DNA from: Guillardia theta CCMP2712
Taxonomy: Eukaryota > Protista > Cryptophyta
Direction: 5' to 3'
NCBI RefSeq assembly: GCF_000315625.1
Contig: NW_005434612.1
Span: forward strand, 62,001-126,000
Length of the DNA: 64,000 bases
The notes beneath the pieces are model-generated. The model made no database searches, was not told the origin of the DNA, and worked only from the letters and a program-made list of their open reading frames with translations. This document shows, one piece after another, positions 43,352 to 55,200 of the stretch. The position numbers were made by a program, and so were the translations under genes. Each line of letters opens with the position of its first letter. The stretch's first letter is position 1.

Positions 43352-45103
43352 TCACTTTATCACACCTAGAGTGATCAATTGTTGCCATGGAACAAACCTA
43401 AATTCTGGACAATCAAGAGCATTCTGTAGCTGTTCATTCATTTTCTTGACCCAACTCTGTTTCGACTTCCGCCAGTCATAATCATATTCTCGTTGTCCAA
43501 TCGTCCACCCCATATTGCTAACCCACGTATCAAAACTGAGAGGGGAAGCTTCTATTTTGAAGTCAGTCTTAGTTTTGACAATGAGACTGCCTTGTAGCTG
43601 TTGATTGTATAAGAAAGCTTCAAAGAAAATGCTGCTGATCTTTGTCATTCTAAACAAGACCACATAGCTTCCCGATTCCAAAGCTTTTTCCAAGATCCTG
43701 AAGGAGAGTAAAGGATGACCAGATTCTGAAGAGCCTAAGAGGCGAAATTTGTTAAGGAAAGCTTCAGCTTCATCGAGAATCTGTGCTTTTGACTTCTCCC
43801 TTTTATGAGGATAGCTCATTATTGTGTCCCAATATTCCATCAATGTGCTTTGAGATTCAATGTTTTGTTGCCCGATCTCCTTTTTAACTGTGTAATTCAC
43901 TATATTGATTATCAGACATCTTTCTACATTTTCATCCGACAAGTCGCAGTCGTTTTCTTCTTGCCACTTGCGAAAGGATACAGAGGAAATCTTTCTTGCT
44001 TTGAAATGTTTCTCGACCAGGCTAAAGAGACTCTCACCGAGATGTCCACCGAACGAAGCAACGTAATTCCGTACCATATCATCTAAGTACTCTGTGTCAT
44101 CGTATCTCAAAAACAAGAGCAGGAATAGTGAACAAATCCTCCATTTACAATTGGCACCATCAGCCAATGAGTGAGAGGATTTCATAAATTCTTCGATAAT
44201 GTTCTTCAAGTCCTTTTGGAAATGTTCAATGTGGTTTGAGGAATGACCAACTACAATCGCCTCTGCAATTTTTCCTGTTGCCTCAGTTGCTTGAAACCTG
44301 GATAGTTCTTGATTTGAAATGTTTTTTTCCAGAGCGGTGCTGATGCAATTCAAGAGCTGGGGTGTTCTGCCATTCTCAACGATACGCAGATCACTAGCAA
44401 TCTTATAACGATTGAATTCAGAAACATTTTCGCAATGGTTTGCAGCATGATCCAGCACTTCCTTCAATTCATTATTGATTCCAAAAACTCCTTTTATGTC
44501 ATGCATCAAGTATTTCATGAACTCTGAATCATCAAAAGTCTTTGAACCACTCGGGCATGTCATGTACAACGCCCATTGTTTCAGCTGAATATCCTCTGTG
44601 GGTTTACTGGGTTGTTCGACATTGTAGCCAGCCTTCACTGGAAAGTTCTCTATGATTTTCCTACAAGCATCGAAGATGATCAGCAGCCTTGCTTTGGAAT
44701 CCTTCTTGAAGGCTTCAGACCAAAATCTCAGAGCACTGCTGATGGAAAGTGCGCAAATATCTATAGAACCCAAGGAACTTAGATCGTCATTGCTGCAGTC
44801 TCCAGGAATCATGTAGACCTCTCCCGTTGGAAGTTGGGCGCCATGCCCAGCATAGAACAAAATGACTTGCTGTGGTGAATCTCTACTGAGATCTTTGAAA
44901 CCAGATCGCAGAAATCGTCCTAAATCAGCTGTATTCTGCACGTCAAGGTTCAACATTGATCTACAACGCTCAGCTTTGGATAACCTCTCATGGAATTCCC
45001 GAGCATCTCTGGCCGCACTCCTCAGCTTATCAAACTGTTTGTACTTGTCGATTCCTATGCACAATGCACCGACCTTCAATCGATCAGGCTGACTGTTCTG
45101 CAT
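43352..45103 (-). CDS. Caspase-like (peptidase C14) protease domain plus helical region; probably the 5' part of a longer spliced gene
   Basis: ALCIGIDKY...LRSAARDA, ILFYAGHG (catalytic His) and IIFDACR (catalytic Cys). Intron 43321-43365 removes the ORF stop and continues DSTQDFTKY... Confidence 0.85.
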   Translation of the reverse strand: MQNSQPDRLKVGALCIGIDKYKQFDKLRSAARDAREFHERLSKAERCRSMLNLDVQNTADLGRFLRSGFKDLSRDSPQQVILFYAGHGAQLPTGEVYMIPGDCSNDDLSSLGSIDICALSISSALRFWSEAFKKDSKARLLIIFDACRKIIENFPVKAGYNVEQPSKPTEDIQLKQWALYMTCPSGSKTFDDSEFMKYLMHDIKGVFGINNELKEVLDHAANHCENVSEFNRYKIASDLRIVENGRTPQLLNCISTALEKNISNQELSRFQATEATGKIAEAIVVGHSSNHIEHFQKDLKNIIEEFMKSSHSLADGANCKWRICSLFLLLFLRYDDTEYLDDMVRNYVASFGGHLGESLFSLVEKHFKARKISSVSFRKWQEENDCDLSDENVERCLIINIVNYTVKKEIGQQNIESQSTLMEYWDTIMSYPHKREKSKAQILDEAEAFLNKFRLLGSSESGHPLLSFRILEKALESGSYVVLFRMTKISSIFFEAFLYNQQLQGSLIVKTKTDFKIEASPLSFDTWVSNMGWTIGQREYDYDWRKSKQSWVKKMNEQLQNALDCPEFRFVPWQQLITLGVIK

Positions 45104-45306: not shown

Positions 45307-45906
45307 ATGGAGCCGATCACCCGTCGCCATCTTCGACCCGCTCATCGCTCGCCAACCACAACCAGGCTGGTCATCGATCCTGTCTTCCTCTCCAAGGTCA
45401 AGTCCTTGGCTGAGGCCTCCGATGGCCTCTTCCTTGCACAATCGGAGGCTGGTGACCCACAGTATGTACGCTGGCGAGATGCGATGGCAGACCCGACGCT
45501 GGAGAGCACGATCTGCTGGGCGAAGATCAAGAACGCCACCCGAGCTATCGAGAAGCTCGTGCGGTCCTACGACTTCTGCGTCTACAAGCTCTTAGATGTG
45601 GTACGACAGTCTATCATCTTCAAGGACCTCGACCATCTGTGCGACTGCCTGGACAAGATTGCCAGGGACCCGGAGATCGAAGTTGTACGAATCAAGAACA
45701 GGCTGGATCCAGACTTCGACAGCAAGATATCGGGGGGCTACCGAGACATTGGGATAAACCTGCGCATCGTCAGCACCCAGACGAAGAAGGAGGGAGTGGA
45801 GGGGCATATCTGCGAGCTCCAGCTTCTGCTTGAAGACTTCCACAAGCTCAAAACCCTCGAAGGGCACAAACGGCACGTGCAGTTCCGAAACCTCCGATGC
45901 GAGTGA
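45307..45906 (+). CDS. Stand-alone RelA/SpoT-like nucleotidyltransferase ORF (199 aa), chimeric copy of the 3' domain of the 47833-51617 gene
   Basis: Motifs KIKNATRAIEK, LLDVVR, VRIKNR, GGYRDIGIN and HICELQL are intact. The ATG comes from unrelated upstream DNA. It could be an unexpressed fragment. Confidence 0.6.
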   Translation: MEPITRRHLRPAHRSPTTTRLVIDPVFLSKVKSLAEASDGLFLAQSEAGDPQYVRWRDAMADPTLESTICWAKIKNATRAIEKLVRSYDFCVYKLLDVVRQSIIFKDLDHLCDCLDKIARDPEIEVVRIKNRLDPDFDSKISGGYRDIGINLRIVSTQTKKEGVEGHICELQLLLEDFHKLKTLEGHKRHVQFRNLRCE

Positions 45907-47832: not shown

Positions 47833-50800
47833 ATGTCTGCAAGGGACGGGGCTCACAAGATTGAGATCGAGGCTGAAGATGCTCAGACCGAGCCCATCCT
47901 GCTTCTGACTCCAAGGAGAATGGATTTCAAGCCAGGCTTCTCACATTTCTACATGCATGTATGCGGTGACTTCCTTCAGAGAAGCACTGCGGAGAGAAAA
48001 GTATACAAGCTCAATCCGTGGCTCATTTTGTTCTCCCATGAGCCTCTTTCTGCCGTACTCACCTTGCTTCCTGTACAAATCATCTTCATCATAGTTGGCA
48101 TGCTGTGGATCATCTTCGAGTCGATATCTCTCAGGCACATTGAATCTACAGGCTACTTCTCTCTGTCTGTTGAGCAGGGAAAAATAGTATCGGAGTTTCT
48201 ATTCCAAGATTATCTTCCAAAGAGCCATCTTGCCTGCACTTGGGAGTTGTCCCTTCAATTAGCAACCAGATACATCATTGGGGCTTCTTTGATGATTTCC
48301 GGCTTCCTGGCGATCAGGAACAAGTTTCATCGATCAAAGCTGGTAGATCCCTCGGTCTGACTCTCATACTGCCAAGTAACGCACATGTGCAGGTCTTGAT
48401 CTTTGCAGGCTTGCTCGATGCGCTGCTGAACTTGCTCATCTTCTTCCGAATGTCGTCCGAGGGCTATGAAGAGACTGCGTTGGGGGGAACACGACACCAG
48501 TTCATGATCTATGCCATCACGGTAGTTCGTGAGATCTGCTAATAGTCAACCGTTGACTCCGTGTATTATCAGGATCTCTTCTTCTTTCCAGCTCCAATGC
48601 TCTTCAGCGAAATGTACGTGGTCGAGCAAGTCAGCCTAGCGCACATCACCATCTTTGGTTCTGCGTTGGGAGCAGGAGTCGTGAGATATGAGAGCATTGT
48701 CATGTTGGCGGTCACTATTCTCTTTCTGGTCTATCGCGAGCTCACAAGATCGAGAACTTTGAGCGAAGCTTTGCACAGTTCTGGTGTGTTTGAGGAGGAA
48801 TGGAATGAGGTGAAGGGCAGCCATGCCATGTTTCGTTTGACCAACGCTCTACGAAATGTACGGGGATGGGGGCCCTACGGACCAACCTTCATCTTGCCTT
48901 CCTCGGATCCCAGGCTTGTCCCTGGCGAATCTGAAGTAGACAAGGAAATTGACGACGAGAAACTTCGAAGAAGCAACCTTGATCAGCTGTACGCCCAGGC
49001 TCTGGTCATCGATCCTGTCTTCCTCTCCAAGGTCAAGTCCTTGGCCGAGGCCTCCGATGGCTTCTTCCTCGCGCAATCGGAGGCTGGTGAGCCACAGTAT
49101 GTACGCTGGCGAGATGCGATGGCAGACCCGACGCTGGAGAGCACGATCTGCTGGGCGAAGATCAAGAACGCCACCCGAGCTATCGAGAAAGTCTTGTTGC
49201 TCTGCGACACTCAAGTGTCCCGCCTTACAGATGTGGTACGACAGAGCATCATCTTCAAGGACCTCGACCATCTGTGCGACTGCCTGGACAAGATTGCCAG
49301 GGACCCGGAGATCGAAGTTGTGCGAATCAAGAACAGGCTGGATCCAGACTTCGACAGCAAGATATCGGGGGGCTACCGAGACATTGGGATAAACCTGCGC
49401 ATCGTCAGCACCCAGACGAAGAAGAAGGGAGTGGAGGGGCATATCTGCGAGCTGAGGCTGGCTTTGATGTCGCTTCATCGGAAGACTAGTACAGGCATGT
49501 TTCAGAGGTACCAACGGGTGAAGCAGGTTCTTCGCTTCCGCACAGGGACGTCTCAGCTGGCGAGAAAGTATGCGGATGCTCCGTTGAGGACGCGGCTGTG
49601 GCGCTTGATGTTTCCGATAGCTCCAATACAAGCCGTATCGCCTTCTGATGTCTGGACGTCGCTCCTGCTGTGTAAGGCATCCACGGACAAGTCGGATGAT
49701 GCTCTCACAATCTTCAAGGGGCTGTTCCCAGGGAACATTCTCGATGATTATCTCTTCACCAGCGCACATGGTGTAGTCGATGCGGCCACATCTACCATCA
49801 TGTACTCGTCGACGCCGCTCAGAAGCGCTTCCTACAAGCCCTTCTTCCAGGTGTTGCTCTTTGTTATTTCGGGCGCCTTTGCATACTCAATCGCCAGTAA
49901 TTCATGGTTGAGTGCGCGTGGAGTGATAGCGAATGGGAAGTTCAGCGCTAGGCACTATCGTCTAGATGTGAATGCCGATCCGTCGATTGCTGTTTCTGCA
50001 CAATCACAATCCTTCCCGAATCGCTCGTTTGCGATGACAAGGGATTCTTGTCGGCGATTCTATCCATCCGCCATCTCGGTGGCAAACTCTTCTATATACT
50101 ACACCTTCGACGAGGACATAGTCGCGAATGGATGGCAGATTGACCTCAGCGCGACTCTCTCTGCTCTTGCCTTCCATCCTTACAATTTTTCTTTATTTCG
50201 TTTTGAGGGGGGCTCAGACCCGCAGCACAGCTTGCGCGAGGACTGGGTCTTGGTAAATAATTTTACGTGCGCAGAGCATCCTGAAATCTCCTTCTGCGAA
50301 GCAAATGGAACAGTAGCTGACGGGCAAACCATCTCCTTCGACCTCCGAGCATCTTGGAAGGACAACCTTTTTTTTTCCTTCTCTACCGTTCAGGCTTCAT
50401 CTTGTTTTCTTGGGGGTGTATTTTCTGTTCTCCGAAAACCCAATCTAGTCAAATTCTGTATCGGGTCCCCGTTCCATGTTGTCGGTGTAGCGGAAATCGC
50501 AGTGGCATTTCCTTTATCTCTCAAGGACAACAGCCTGATGACTCTTTCTTGGGGAATAGCCGATTTCAGCCTTGGGATGTTAATGCAATTCAGAGAGCGA
50601 TACTCGCTACAGTATCTGCCTCTCTATGTGATCTTCACTACTTTCTTCAACATCGCTTTTTCGACCTCTTGGTTTGAAGATCCTTTTGATGCATCGTATT
50701 TTCCGTTTACAAGCTATGTCCTAAGTGGCCTCTGGCTCTACTTTCGGTTCAAGAGGGATTATCTCTACCGCAAGGCTGTGAAGCAAGTCGAGCCCGACCG

Positions 50801-51617
50801 GTTGAAGTACGACGAGTGCTGGAGCAGGTACATCTCGAATGAGCCCTGCAGGAAGCGACTCGAGAAGATCAGTGCGCTGTGTCGTCCTCACCTTTCAACC
50901 CGCAAAGTACAGCAGAAGTGTCGCAGAGATCCTCAACTCCTGCGCCGAGACATCGCCATCTTCGACCCGCTCATCGCTCGCTATAGCAACGCAGGTGGCA
51001 GTATCTTCGCTCCCGTCAAGTGCGGCGGCATCGAGTACGGTCCCTTGTACTCTCTCGACCAGCTGTACGCCCAGGCTCTGGTCATCGATCCCGTCTTCCT
51101 CTCCAAGGTCAAGTCCTTGGCCGAGGCCTCCGATGGCTTCTTCCTCGCGCAATCGGAGGCTGGCGAGCCACAGTATGTACGCTGGCGAGATGCGATGGCA
51201 GACCCGACGCTGGAGAGCACGATCTGCTGGGCGAAGATCAAGAACGCCACCCGAGCTATCGAGAAGCTCGTGCGGTCCTACGACTTCTGCGTCTACAAGC
51301 TCACAGATGTGGTACGACAGTGCATCATCTTCAAGGACCTCGACCATCTGTGCGACTGCCTGGACAAGATTGCCAGGGACCCGGAGATCGAAGTTGTGCG
51401 AATCAAGAACAGGCTGGATCCAGACTTCGACAGCAAGATATCGGGGGGCTACCGAGACATTGGGATAAACCTGCGCATCGTCAGCACCCAGACGAAGAAG
51501 AAGGGAGTGGAGGGGCATATCTGCGAGCTCCAGCTTCTGCTTGAAGACTTCCACAAGCTCAAAACCCTCGAAGGGCACAAACGGCACGTGCAGTTCCGAA
51601 ACCTCCGATGCGAGTGA
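47833..51617 (+). CDS. Multipass membrane protein with two RelA/SpoT-like synthetase domains (~1227 aa)
   Basis: Exons 47833-48342, 48393-48521 and 48573-51617 (both introns GT-AG, phase 0). Hydrophobic block, domain 1 (about 48978-49480), TM plus a loop with five N-x-S/T sequons, second hydrophobic block, domain 2 (about 51054-51614). Confidence 0.8.
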
Positions 51618-51973: not shown

Positions 51974-52261
51974 AAGACGCGTTACAAAACAGTTACTAAG
52001 GAATGGAGAGGAACAAATGGTGAATGGTGAAGGGCGCGAAGAAAGCAATCAGGCAGAGAGTTGTCGTGCAGCCACAGAGAGAGCAGAATGAAAGGCGTGT
52101 GAAGGCAGAAACAATACATATCGAGATGGAGGATTGGAGGACAGATTGGAGGATGGTTGGGAGTGTAAAGACTAATCCTTGCCTACCGTCGGCAAAAACC
52201 GGAGTGTGGTGATGATTGTTCTGACTTCTTTATCTTCCAGGTATTTCACTTGGCTGGAAGG

Positions 52262-55200
52262 ATGAGCTTCCTGACCGGGGGCTCTACGCCTGTCAAAGCC
52301 GGTGAAGTCGGCGTGGGATGCGCTCTGGGGCAGAACGAAGCAGGAGAGGTGGTTGTGAAAGGCCTGGCGCATGGTGGCCCTTGCCACCTCTGCTGTCAAG
52401 TAGCGATAGGAGACGTTGTCGTGAGTGTGGATGGATCTCTCATCAATGGGGATGTCAGGCTAGCAAAGGCACTCTTCCTCGGGGAGGACGGGACGGGCGT
52501 CACGCTGACTCTCAGGAGGAACGGCATAGCAAGGAATGTTCACCTGCTGCGAGGGAAACCGATCGAGCATCGCCCTGTCAAGGAAGGAGAGCTCTGCGGC
52601 ATCGGAGTGACTCTCAACTCTGTACGGGGAGGACTTGCGATATCCAAGATCGCGCCTGGAAGTCCGGCGCAGCTCTCAGGAGAGTTGCAGACCATGGACG
52701 TGATCATGAGCGTGAACGGAACGGACGTGCAGGGCAAGTCAGTCCAGGACGTGGTGCCGATGATGGTCGGTCAACCTGGAACTCGTTTGACATTGAGCAT
52801 CATCAGAGGTTGCGACTCCTTGGTCTCGATCGTCCGTGGCTGTTGACGTCTGTACTTTGACCAGGCCGCGGAGCGAAACGACAGATTGATATGGTACGAG
52901 CTCACAACCTGGAGCAGGCGGCTATCCCAAAAGCCTCACAATACCGCTACAATGCATTGGTGATAGAGAAACATCTTGTGCTGCTAGTTGCTCACTGGTG
53001 GGCTCGTAGGTGGAGCAACAGGCTCTGTCGTATACCTGGCTTCGCCGAATGCATCGCAAGATCTCCAAGTCGGTTCATGGAGGGCAGGTTGGAAGGAAGA
53101 TGTCGCAATTTTCATGCAGTGCGTCTGATAGTTTGTCAGGGCACTGTCAATGAAGTGACCTTTGACGGGATCGCCAGTCCTATTCGAATTGCGTTGAAGG
53201 TGGGCAGTTTTGGTTCCATCAGTGCAATCTAATGTTGTGATGCATACAATTTCTTGCAGGTTGTGTATCAGAGAGGTTCAAGCTTCAAATCAGCGGAAAG
53301 ATCGCTCTGGTTGAATGTGGACAACCATCCCCACATCTTGCCTCTACTTTTTACCGCGGGGCCGAACATGTACAACATTTGTTCATTGAGCATCAAGTGT
53401 TTGATCAAGCACCTCCAGGCTCTTTATGCCTTTCATGGAGCTTGCTTCAGTCACCGACTGGCTGTCGCAGTCATCGGGTAATCTCTTTCCTTGCAGCCTC
53501 GCCCTGCTTAAGAGGCTCTGCAGAATCAAAATCCTTGCCGTCAGAGGACTTGCGGCAAGTTCACCAGATGATCGGACTTCAGGTAACTCAAGAATTCAAG
53601 TTCGTCCGACCCATGCAATCCTTTGACTTCACTTGTGCAGGTCTCATGGGCCTTAGAGCACATGCATAAAGTGGGTTTTCGGCTCTAGACCGCTCAGTTA
53701 ACCTGACTTTGCTGCACAGGTCGGAACGCTACATCTGGACATGAAGCCCAACAATATCCTTGTGCGGCTCCGCGGTGATGGACGGATGAGTCTCTGGAAG
53801 CGGCTGCATTGCTTGGGTATACAGAATGAAGGAACGCTAGAAGCTGTGACCTTGCTCCCGTAGTTTGCGATTTCGGGCTGGCAGCTGTCAACATTGAAGG
53901 CTCGGCAACAGGAAGAGGAGGAACGCCAGGTGAAGATCAGACAATCACCTCAAATTCTCACCCGTTTCTCTCCCCCATCGCCACTTTGACACTTTGACAC
54001 TTCTCCCTGTAGGGTTTTGGGCTCCTGAACTGATCCCCTTGGATGGAAGCGGCGTCCCCGTGCCTTACTGGACGGAGGCCTGCTCAGATCCCCCTCCTCA
54101 CTGCAGAGCCAACATTACTGACAAGGCAGACACTTGGATGTGGGCCACCACAATGCTGGCGATCATGGATCGTCTGGAGAGGATGAGGGGCCAGGGGTAT
54201 GCTGCTTTCACTGCCCAGCTTGCAAGGGGAGATGGATTGGATCGGTTGATCTCCAACTGTTTGAAACCTCAGCCTCAAGATCGGCTCCCCATTTCTATCG
54301 TCTCTTTGACGATGCAGAGGTTGATGAGAGACAAAGGGCTCGATGTGTTCAAGCCGATGGACGAGGATAAGTCGGTCATTGAGTACGCCCGCGCCGGCTA
54401 CACTCTTTGCATGAGCCTGATGGGGCAAGACGATCCGCAGACCTGGGCTGCGACGGAGAGGCTGGTTCGCGTGCTGCGGACTCATGGAGACTACAAGGAG
54501 GCTGAGATGCTCTGCAGCAATGTCCTCGAGCGAAAGATCAAATGTGAGGCAGAACCCTCCTCCATTGCTCGGACTCAGCGCCAGCTGGGGGGTATCTTGG
54601 ACGATCTCGGGCGATATGACAGTGCCTCCAAGTGCTATCGCGGAGCTCTGGAGGTCCAAGTGCGGTCACTTGGCTCGAACCACATCGACGTGGCGAGCAC
54701 GAAGGACAGTCTTGGAGTGACGCTTTGGCGACAAGGCAAGTTTGATGAAGCACTCAAGCTCTATGACGAGGCTCTTGTCGTGCGAGAGTCGGTCCTGGGC
54801 AGCGAGCATGTTCTGGTCGCTAAGACGATTGTGAACAGAGCTAACGTTTACTTCCGACAAGGACAGTTCATGCGAGCCTTGGCTGACTACAGTCGGGCGC
54901 TGGAGATCGAGAAGCGAACACTGGGCGAGGAGCACGTATTGGTGGCAAAGACAAAGAACAACATGGGCGAGGCCCTTCGAGTTGAAGGCAAGTATGAAGA
55001 AGCGCTTCAGCTCTATCAAGAGAGCCTCGTGGTCTTGTCCAAGGTGCTCGGAAACTCGCACGTGCTGGTAGCCAACACCAAGAACAACATCGCGGGTATC
55101 TTTTTGAAGCAGGACAAGTGCGACGAAGCTTTGCAGTACTACATGGAGTCGTTGGACACCAAGTTGAAGGTGTTGGGCCCCGGTCACGCTGACGTCGCAA

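Follow-up and report, generated by a model that had tools for sequence, protein, structure and literature searches.

Introduction

To our knowledge, alarmone synthesis in eukaryotes is a plastid pathway derived from bacteria, and the enzymes known for it are soluble and carry a hydrolase domain. Here we describe a gene of the cryptophyte Guillardia theta CCMP2712 that lies at 47833-51617 on the forward strand of a 64,000-nt stretch of contig NW_005434612.1 (positions 62,001 to 126,000; assembly GCF_000315625.1). This whole stretch is called the window, and all coordinates refer to it. The spliced product of three exons has 1227 amino acids and is best explained, as far as models go, as an integral membrane protein made of two homologous modules, each with six transmembrane (TM) helices and a cytosolic domain of the RelA/SpoT-synthetase fold (SYN1 and SYN2), with no hydrolase domain. 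The predicted layout is 6TM - SYN1 - 6TM (with a beta-rich loop of 153 residues and five sequons) - SYN2.

The known eukaryotic members of the RelA/SpoT superfamily are the plant and algal RSH enzymes (RSH1-4, CRSH), which act in plastids (PMC10107265). Two such loci are present in Guillardia. RSH enzymes carry a hydrolase domain and pass the Pfam threshold, whereas the SYN protein is leaderless, has no HD domain (the N-terminal hydrolase domain by which, along with TGS/ACT regions, long RSH such as Rel, RelA, SpoT and the plant enzymes are recognized) and contains twelve predicted TM helices. Unplaced "divRel" synthetases were listed in diatoms, Dictyostelium and fungi by Atkinson 2011, with no membrane architecture and no tandem layout (PMC3153485). 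Compared by description only, they resemble the present protein in being divergent, synthetase-only RSH relatives in protists outside the named subfamilies.

Among bacterial enzymes, the small alarmone synthetases (SAS) RelQ/SAS1 and RelP/SAS2 (PDB 5DED, 6EWZ, 6FGK) share with SYN the synthetase fold (Z 10.8-11.7, TM-score up to 0.57), the lack of HD, and matching ATP-binding lysines, Mg-binding Asp, G-Y-R and E-x-Q. SAS proteins are tetramers. They are soluble, bacterial and about 200 residues long, whereas the Guillardia protein is eukaryotic and carries two copies behind six-helix blocks. Identity between SAS and the family is 9-16%, the Pfam model has no match in the Guillardia protein, and HMMER aligns the basic residue that follows the Mg-binding Asp at +3 in the family instead of +5. 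The stand-alone, soluble, single-domain format of SAS is not that of the 1227-residue chain and is found only in a small open reading frame (ORF) at 45307-45906.

Tas1/Apk1 (6OX6) shares with the family K-x3-R-A-x2-K and D-x2-R in place of the canonical motifs. Tas1/Apk1 and the exported synthetases (8VX3; PMC12691689) are, however, bacterial, being toxins that are secreted or injected, or else exported enzymes that carry a signal peptide or a domain for type VI or type VII secretion, whereas the Guillardia SYN domains are tethered, in tandem and predicted on the cytosolic face. The 2025 study of exported alarmone synthetases is confined to bacteria, leaves eukaryotes unmentioned and states that the members characterized earlier all act in the bacterial cytoplasm (PMC12691689). 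The tRNA pyrophosphokinases CapRel and toxSAS (7ZTB, 8PU4) have the same fold and are sensor-controlled and synthetase-only, but they belong to bacteria and phage defence, have a C-terminal pseudo-antitoxin or a partner antitoxin, and lack a membrane module.

In layout, the predicted protein resembles the class III transmembrane adenylyl cyclases (6TM-C1-6TM-C2), which likewise have homologous halves of six helices and a cytosolic nucleotide-converting domain, and the first catalytic copy is the more divergent one in both systems. The catalytic fold of the cyclases is unrelated to SYN. Their active site forms at the C1-C2 interface, whereas the site of a RelA/SpoT synthetase lies within one domain.

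Results

Two RelA/SpoT-like synthetase domains in one chain

An initial annotation of the locus had pointed to two domains, each with the motifs K..RAIEK, DVVR, KNR, GGYRD...N and HICEL(R/Q), and each of these motifs is indeed found twice in the translation. The two domains lie as follows.

48972-49526, forward strand: SYN1, first RelA/SpoT-like synthetase domain, residues 347-531 (family hidden Markov model (HMM) 247.7 bits; VIA match to RelP 6fgk)
51045-51614, forward strand: SYN2, the second such domain, residues 1038-1227, in which all motifs of the family are present (family HMM 275.7 bits)

The repetition goes well past what chance would give, with 95-99% identity between the DNA repeats and a family-HMM score of more than 245 bits for either domain. 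Neither SYN domain reaches any Pfam threshold, and nothing was matched in a PDB search with the single sequence. Neither of these searches gave a usable match; the relationship to known enzymes was revealed by the family profile only. A sub-threshold PF04607 match was seen in the relative P0014 (20.2 bits vs a cut-off of 27), and Pfam found one weak RelA_SpoT match and one fusion of an ADP-ribosyltransferase (ART) with leucine-rich repeats (LRR) among 55 single-unit relatives. HD and HD_4 hydrolase domains were absent from the 1227-residue protein in Pfam, as the initial annotation had said.

The family alignment and profile were made from 47 domains, with residues numbered on the translation of window:51000-51614. 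K81, K89, D103, R106, D127, R152 and E176 are invariant in all 47, and G150, Y151 and Q178 are 96-100% conserved among the C-terminal domains. The best match of the profile was Tas1 (6OX6), a (p)ppApp synthetase toxin (E 6e-4; 22.9 bits), while Bacillus subtilis YwaC/RelP (6FGK) matched at E 0.013 (18.5 bits). The YwaC alignment spans the core and sets K81 and K89 opposite the ATP-binding lysines, D103 opposite the Mg-binding Asp, G-Y-R opposite NGYRS, and E176-x-Q opposite EIQ.

Structure comparison gave a similar picture. The AlphaFold model of SYN2 has a pLDDT of 90.6, and all of the 50 matches listed by Foldseek against the PDB were RelA/SpoT synthetases, including RelP 6ex0 (E 9e-6), CapRel (E 4e-5), RelQ (TM-score 0.57), an exported alarmone synthetase, Tas1 and Rel/SpoT/RelA. 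Foldseek with the full-length model likewise returned synthetase matches only. For SYN1, taken from the full-length model, VIA gave Z 11.7 for RelP, 10.8 for RelQ, 10.5 for Tas1 and 10.2 for CapRel, with Rel also within 10-11.7, and the next, unrelated (nucleotidyltransferase-like) folds followed at Z about 6.5. No class III cyclase was among the matches listed in the structure searches. By profile and predicted structure, the fold and catalytic constellation of SYN are those of a RelA/SpoT synthetase, as the initial annotation had proposed, though the family sits outside the Pfam model.

The Tas1 match bears on an alternative reading, in which the protein would be an effector of immunity or conflict. 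The membrane module would sense non-self (a virus, a grazer or a competitor) and trigger toxic SYN activity, either (p)ppApp synthesis that drains ATP, as with Tas1/Apk1, or pyrophosphorylation of tRNA 3' ends, as with CapRel and toxSAS, and the outcome would be growth arrest or cell death, not ordinary signalling. We regard this as unlikely. It is in its favour that the toxin Tas1 is the best sequence-profile match, shares K-x3-R-A-x2-K and D-x2-R with the family, and has the highest identity (17%) and the lowest root-mean-square deviation (2.8 A) among the top structural matches to SYN1, and that CapRel reaches a Z above 10. However, the margin of Tas1 over RelP/RelQ is small in bits and is reversed in Z (10.5 vs 11.7). 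The family is slightly nearer to the Tas1/Apk1 type than to RelP/RelQ by HMM score, identity and deviation, with small margins. Further evidence on this alternative is given with the family below.

Structure of the gene

The stretch had been read as one piece in the initial annotation. This part had to be given up, for the gene is not a single open frame. Two ORFs underlie it, an ATG-started one at 47833-48360 and a long one at 48561-51617, and they are joined by splicing out two short GT..AG introns.

47833-48342, forward strand: exon 1, residues 1-170; an acidic N-terminus on the cytosolic side, then TM1, a short outside loop in which Cys-x-Trp is conserved, and TM2 (predicted)
48343-48392, forward strand: intron 1, 50 nt, GT..AG, shifts the reading frame (from paralog alignment; same exon pattern in the contig C40 paralog)
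48393-48521, forward strand: exon 2, 43 residues; TM3 and the start of TM4 (residues kept in the C40 paralog and in P0152/P0153)
48522-48572, forward strand: intron 2, 51 nt, GT..AG, takes out an in-frame TAA and TAG at 48540-48545
48573-51617, forward strand: exon 3, 1014 residues and the stop; the last part of TM block 1, then SYN1, TM block 2 including the outside loop, and SYN2

The GT donor at 48343 falls on a codon boundary, and the product of exon 1 aligns with the paralogs P0152, P0153 and P0001. The spliced frame has no internal stop, and its product can be aligned over the full length with Guillardia paralogs that are annotated at 1195-1258 residues. This three-exon pattern, with the conserved middle exon of 43 residues, recurs in the nearest paralog, on contig C40. 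Intron positions were set by paralog comparison alone.

Two homologous membrane blocks and an outside loop

A block of several TM helices ahead of each SYN domain was part of the initial annotation, and hydropathy, paralog alignment and the AlphaFold model all bear this out.

48022-48749, forward strand: TM block 1, residues about 64-272, six predicted helices (hydropathy, paralog alignment, profile homology)
49839-49895, forward strand: TM block 2, helix 1, residues 636-654 (AlphaFold model helix 423-441; hydropathy 1.79)
49896-50354, forward strand: predicted outside (luminal or extracellular) beta-rich domain, residues 655-807 (model beta strands 457-590)
50355-50777, forward strand: TM block 2, helices 2-6, residues 808-948 (AlphaFold helices 595-619, 623-645, 654-673, 675-700, 712-755)
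50778-51044, forward strand: juxtamembrane helix and linker, residues 949-1037, with the motif D...YD..W; the helix is continuous with TM6 in the model

Block 1 spans both introns, and its last two helices are covered by the AlphaFold model, which was made from exon 3 (mean pLDDT 77.9, pTM 0.61) with a shallow alignment of 28 sequences. When the two blocks were compared by hhalign, homology was found over 318 columns with a probability of 99.9% (E 2e-32), from a PG-x-x-L motif ahead of TM1 through a D...(F/Y)...W motif after TM6, and the D...YD..W motif is conserved behind both blocks. This profile homology indicates, at the level of sequence, that the protein is an internal duplication of one [TM1 - outside loop - TM2-6 - SYN] module. 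Single copies of the TM-SYN module are found as the relatives of about 650 residues.

The long loop in block 2, with the sequons NRS, NSS, NFS, NFT and NGT and with cysteines, was correctly noticed in the initial annotation. It corresponds to the predicted outside domain of residues 655-807, contains three Cys, and has conserved Cys, Trp and Arg columns in the family. Five of the seven sequons of the protein lie in these 153 residues; the other two are NAT within the catalytic K-x-x-x-R-A-I-E-K motif. In charge, the short loops are basic on the predicted inside (LRK, R, and a K/R-rich stretch past TM6) and acidic on the predicted outside. No signal peptide or plastid leader was found at the N-terminus of the 1227-residue protein, which is acidic and hydrophilic for about 60 residues, in agreement with the earlier remark that a plastid leader is missing.

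With six helices per block and homologous blocks, SYN1 and SYN2 should lie on the same side of the membrane together with the N-terminus, and the sequon-rich loop domain on the opposite side. A cytosolic position of the SYN domains fits the loop charges, the placement of the sequons and the leaderless N-terminus in this predicted topology. The analogy with adenylyl cyclases, also drawn in the initial annotation, holds as a layout, in which the homology of the blocks, the six helices of block 2 and the loop charges are all matters of prediction. A complex prediction of SYN1 with SYN2 gave a score of 0.05, and no pairing is claimed.

In a wide VIA search the helix bundle matched TMEM45A (Z 9.9) and rhodopsins and Ste2 (Z about 7). 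A 7TM-type fold was not assigned to it, as such Z values are common for helical bundles.

SYN1 and SYN2 form a mosaic of near-identical and distinct segments

The DNA identity between the two domains is distributed in the following way.

48978-49184, forward strand: tract A of SYN1, partner in SYN2 51054-51260; putative conversion tract, 207 nt, 98.1% DNA identity
49185-49223, forward strand: island of 39 nt between the tracts, partner 51261-51299; 51% identical within the gene
49224-49451, forward strand: tract B of SYN1, partner in SYN2 51300-51527; putative conversion tract, 228 nt, 99.1% DNA identity

The C40 paralog shows the same mosaic, with a SYN1-SYN2 identity of 99.5% in tract A, 48.7% in the island and 99.1% in tract B. 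Between the paralogs, in turn, the tracts are about 85% identical and the island is 82-92% conserved by position. The C-terminal tails also differ between SYN1 and SYN2: SYN1 here is without the GH.RY..FR tail, and it has Cys at the family position Tyr94 and Arg at Gln178.

A recent duplication of the whole module was considered as the cause of the identity and rejected, since BLASTP failed to align the TM blocks of the two halves (E 4.5), whereas DNA identity between the SYN cores is 98-99%. Near-identical cores behind unalignable TM blocks point instead to intragenic gene conversion, with a protected difference, as the explanation of the mosaic. Selection would thus keep SYN1 distinct from SYN2 at specific places despite homogenization.

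In a tree of N-terminal, C-terminal and single domains, a gene's own two domains were starred as sisters in four cases (this gene, P0004, P0005 and P0006); in the other genes the N-domains fell into separate, long-branched groups. In 23 tandem proteins, conservation of the catalytic core is 96-100% for the N-terminal and the C-terminal domain alike, and the metal- and ATP-binding residues are 100% conserved in SYN2. The N-domains are relaxed at Y94, R134, R138, Y151, D153, N157, Q178 (Arg in about half) and H193.

It could be argued from this relaxation that one or both SYN domains are pseudo-enzymes, that is, non-catalytic ligand-binding or scaffold modules, with the real activity (transport, or a channel) in the helix bundle. 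The eight relaxed positions are otherwise near-invariant, SYN1 domains sit on long branches, the SYN1 of this gene has Cys94 and Arg178 and lacks the tail, and the bundle is weakly 7TM-like. However, the metal- and ATP-binding residues are 96-100% conserved even in SYN1, the ratio of nonsynonymous to synonymous substitution (dN/dS) in the SYN domains (0.15-0.18) is the lowest in the protein, and the 7TM resemblance is under the level that is meaningful for helical bundles. We consider a pseudo-enzyme quite improbable.

A large family in Guillardia and its relatives

A search of the genome (87.1 Mb, 669 contigs) gave 88 domain matches at about 50 loci, which by a manual count from the table of matches break down into about 29 genes with two domains in tandem and about 20 genes or fragments with a single domain. 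The family is partly clustered on contigs C30, C206, C1, C13 and C49. Local clusters, some with inverted pairs, were seen on C30 (477-529 kb), C206 (46-57 kb) and C1 (834-843 kb). The arrangement in clusters and inverted pairs suggests expansion by local duplication. Canonical RSH genes (HD_4 + RelA_SpoT) were present at two loci only, on contigs C47 and C24.

When SYN2 was searched against 1.84 billion cluster representatives, 1745 related clusters were obtained, 172 of them at E <1e-30. Many are 1000-1700 residues long with two domains, and many have about 650 residues with one. The named relatives are cryptophytes (Hanusia, Hemiselmis, Rhodomonas and Cryptomonas, including a Cryptomonas paramecium entry). 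Since several of these are complete transcripts, relatives do express the family. Neighbours in the ESM Atlas were unnamed eukaryotic clusters labelled diatom or ciliate, and then bacterial PF04607 clusters. One metagenome protein of 1959 residues, P0148, has an NAD:arginine ADP-ribosyltransferase and leucine-rich repeats ahead of a single SYN domain.

Comparison with the C40 paralog gave a dN/dS of 0.23 overall, 0.15 in SYN1, 0.18 in SYN2 and 0.26 in the outside domain. On these sequence comparisons purifying selection acts along the whole protein, and the loop shows no gross trace of diversifying selection.

In searches of the open-access literature we found neither a membrane-bound nor a tandem RSH described for any eukaryote. 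The initial annotation depended on the architecture being undescribed, and this holds in part: the architecture of the family of about 50 genes is new to the literature that we found, while the domain call is partly in databases already, as the UniRef automatic name "RelA/SpoT domain-containing protein" on at least three paralogs, and "divRel" had been listed by Atkinson 2011 (PMC3153485).

The features of the family bear again on the effector of immunity or conflict. A large, partly clustered family homogenized by gene conversion is like many immune receptor families, and one relative has the ART-LRR-SYN fusion; moreover, the gene is near-silent in the RNA run sampled (about 6% read), the genome search gave no stand-alone hydrolase, and a neighbouring gene has a caspase domain and a sub-threshold "conflict" GHKL match. 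On the other hand, selection on the outside domain is purifying and not diversifying when the two nearest paralogs are compared (dN/dS 0.26), gene neighbourhood carries little meaning in eukaryotes, and the TIR_2 matches of the genome are not adjacent to SYN loci.

As an observation apart, TIR_2 had 17 matches in the genome, most of them in open frames of about 1300 residues, which form a second large, possibly signalling or immune, family. None of the 17 matches lay beside a SYN locus.

Neighbouring genes

45307-45906, forward strand: solo SYN ORF of 199 residues (protein P0002), 97% identical to SYN2, with a SYN2-type island and tail

This ORF lies 2 kb upstream of the gene, has no TM block and is missing the opening portion of helix 1. 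Its protein, an entry of the public collection, may act as a soluble synthetase, or the ORF may be a remnant of duplication. Head to head with it, on the reverse strand at 43352-45103, is an ORF of 583 residues with a Peptidase_C14 caspase domain (E 1.9e-10) and a sub-threshold match to GHKL "HisKin-conflict". Directly downstream of the gene, at 52250-52846 on the forward strand, is an ORF with a PDZ_2 domain (E 1.4e-15). In P0151, the annotated C40 paralog, the SYN gene is merged with SH3, PDZ and WW domains; the duplicated segment may include the PDZ neighbour, or the annotation of P0151 may be a false fusion.

Discussion

On the sequence comparisons and models given above, the best reading of the protein is probably a membrane-regulated cytosolic pyrophosphokinase. 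The SYN domains would bind ATP-Mg and move its beta,gamma-pyrophosphate onto an acceptor at the 3'-OH; with a purine nucleotide as the most likely acceptor, a product of the (p)ppGpp or (p)ppApp type would arise in the cytosol. The membrane module, consisting of the presumably glycosylated beta-rich loop domain and the helix bundle, would control SYN activity, and the signal would pass through the long helix that leads from TM6 into the juxtamembrane region. SYN2 would be the canonical catalytic unit. SYN1 keeps the core but is relaxed at positions that align with the acceptor side of bacterial synthetases, which makes the role of a specialized or regulatory partner probable.

Several points weigh against this reading. 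PF04607 gives no match to the 1227-residue protein even at E 1, so the homology to RelA/SpoT is remote. The topology is a prediction, made from the 28-sequence alignment (pTM 0.61) and simple counts of charges and sequons. The sequence does not reveal the acceptor; among the structural neighbours are enzymes acting on GDP/GTP, on ATP/ADP and on tRNA. Neither a stand-alone HD_4 hydrolase nor an evident degrading partner was found genome-wide, both HD_4 loci being ordinary long RSH genes. Finally, RNA coverage of the gene amounts to 3 reads in one raw-read RNA run sampled to about 6%. Two further runs that were guessed to be RNA had zero reads on the gene stretch; good coverage of it comes from runs of DNA-like contigs, which agree with the sequence and have about 2-3x the flanking depth over the repeated part.

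From the practically zero RNA coverage it might be supposed that the gene is a silent or decaying copy, kept intact by recent duplication and gene conversion and not by a function of its own. The database has no full-length protein for the locus, unlike its paralogs, a truncated solo SYN copy lies 2 kb upstream, and conversion is able to mask decay. Yet the spliced frame of 1227 codons is intact with correctly placed introns, dN/dS is 0.23 over the full length, unconverted parts included, the position-specific 39-nt island is preserved against conversion, and the RNA sample was only that small part of one run. A silent copy therefore seems very improbable to us.

Going beyond the membrane-regulated pyrophosphokinase itself, we tentatively propose, as a possibility in which we place limited confidence, that cryptophytes, and probably other protists too, use 3'-pyrophosphorylated purine nucleotides of the (p)ppGpp/(p)ppApp type as receptor-coupled cytosolic second messengers. 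About 50 tandem 6TM-SYN receptors would then fill the role that adenylyl cyclases have in animals, with SYN1 as a diverged regulatory partner of SYN2 whose difference is shielded from conversion. The 13-codon island, conserved by position, would mark where SYN1 and SYN2 differ in function, and the conversion mosaic may be used as a natural experiment.

A large family of this kind would have one of two meanings. If the signalling view is true, receptors in some eukaryotes govern a cytosolic signal made of magic-spot-type nucleotides or of RNA pyrophosphorylation. If the alternative is true, bacterial toxin chemistry has been adopted for the eukaryotes' own defence. The matter is directly testable, for the SYN domains are small, model well and have the expected catalytic residues, and either outcome would extend RSH biology.

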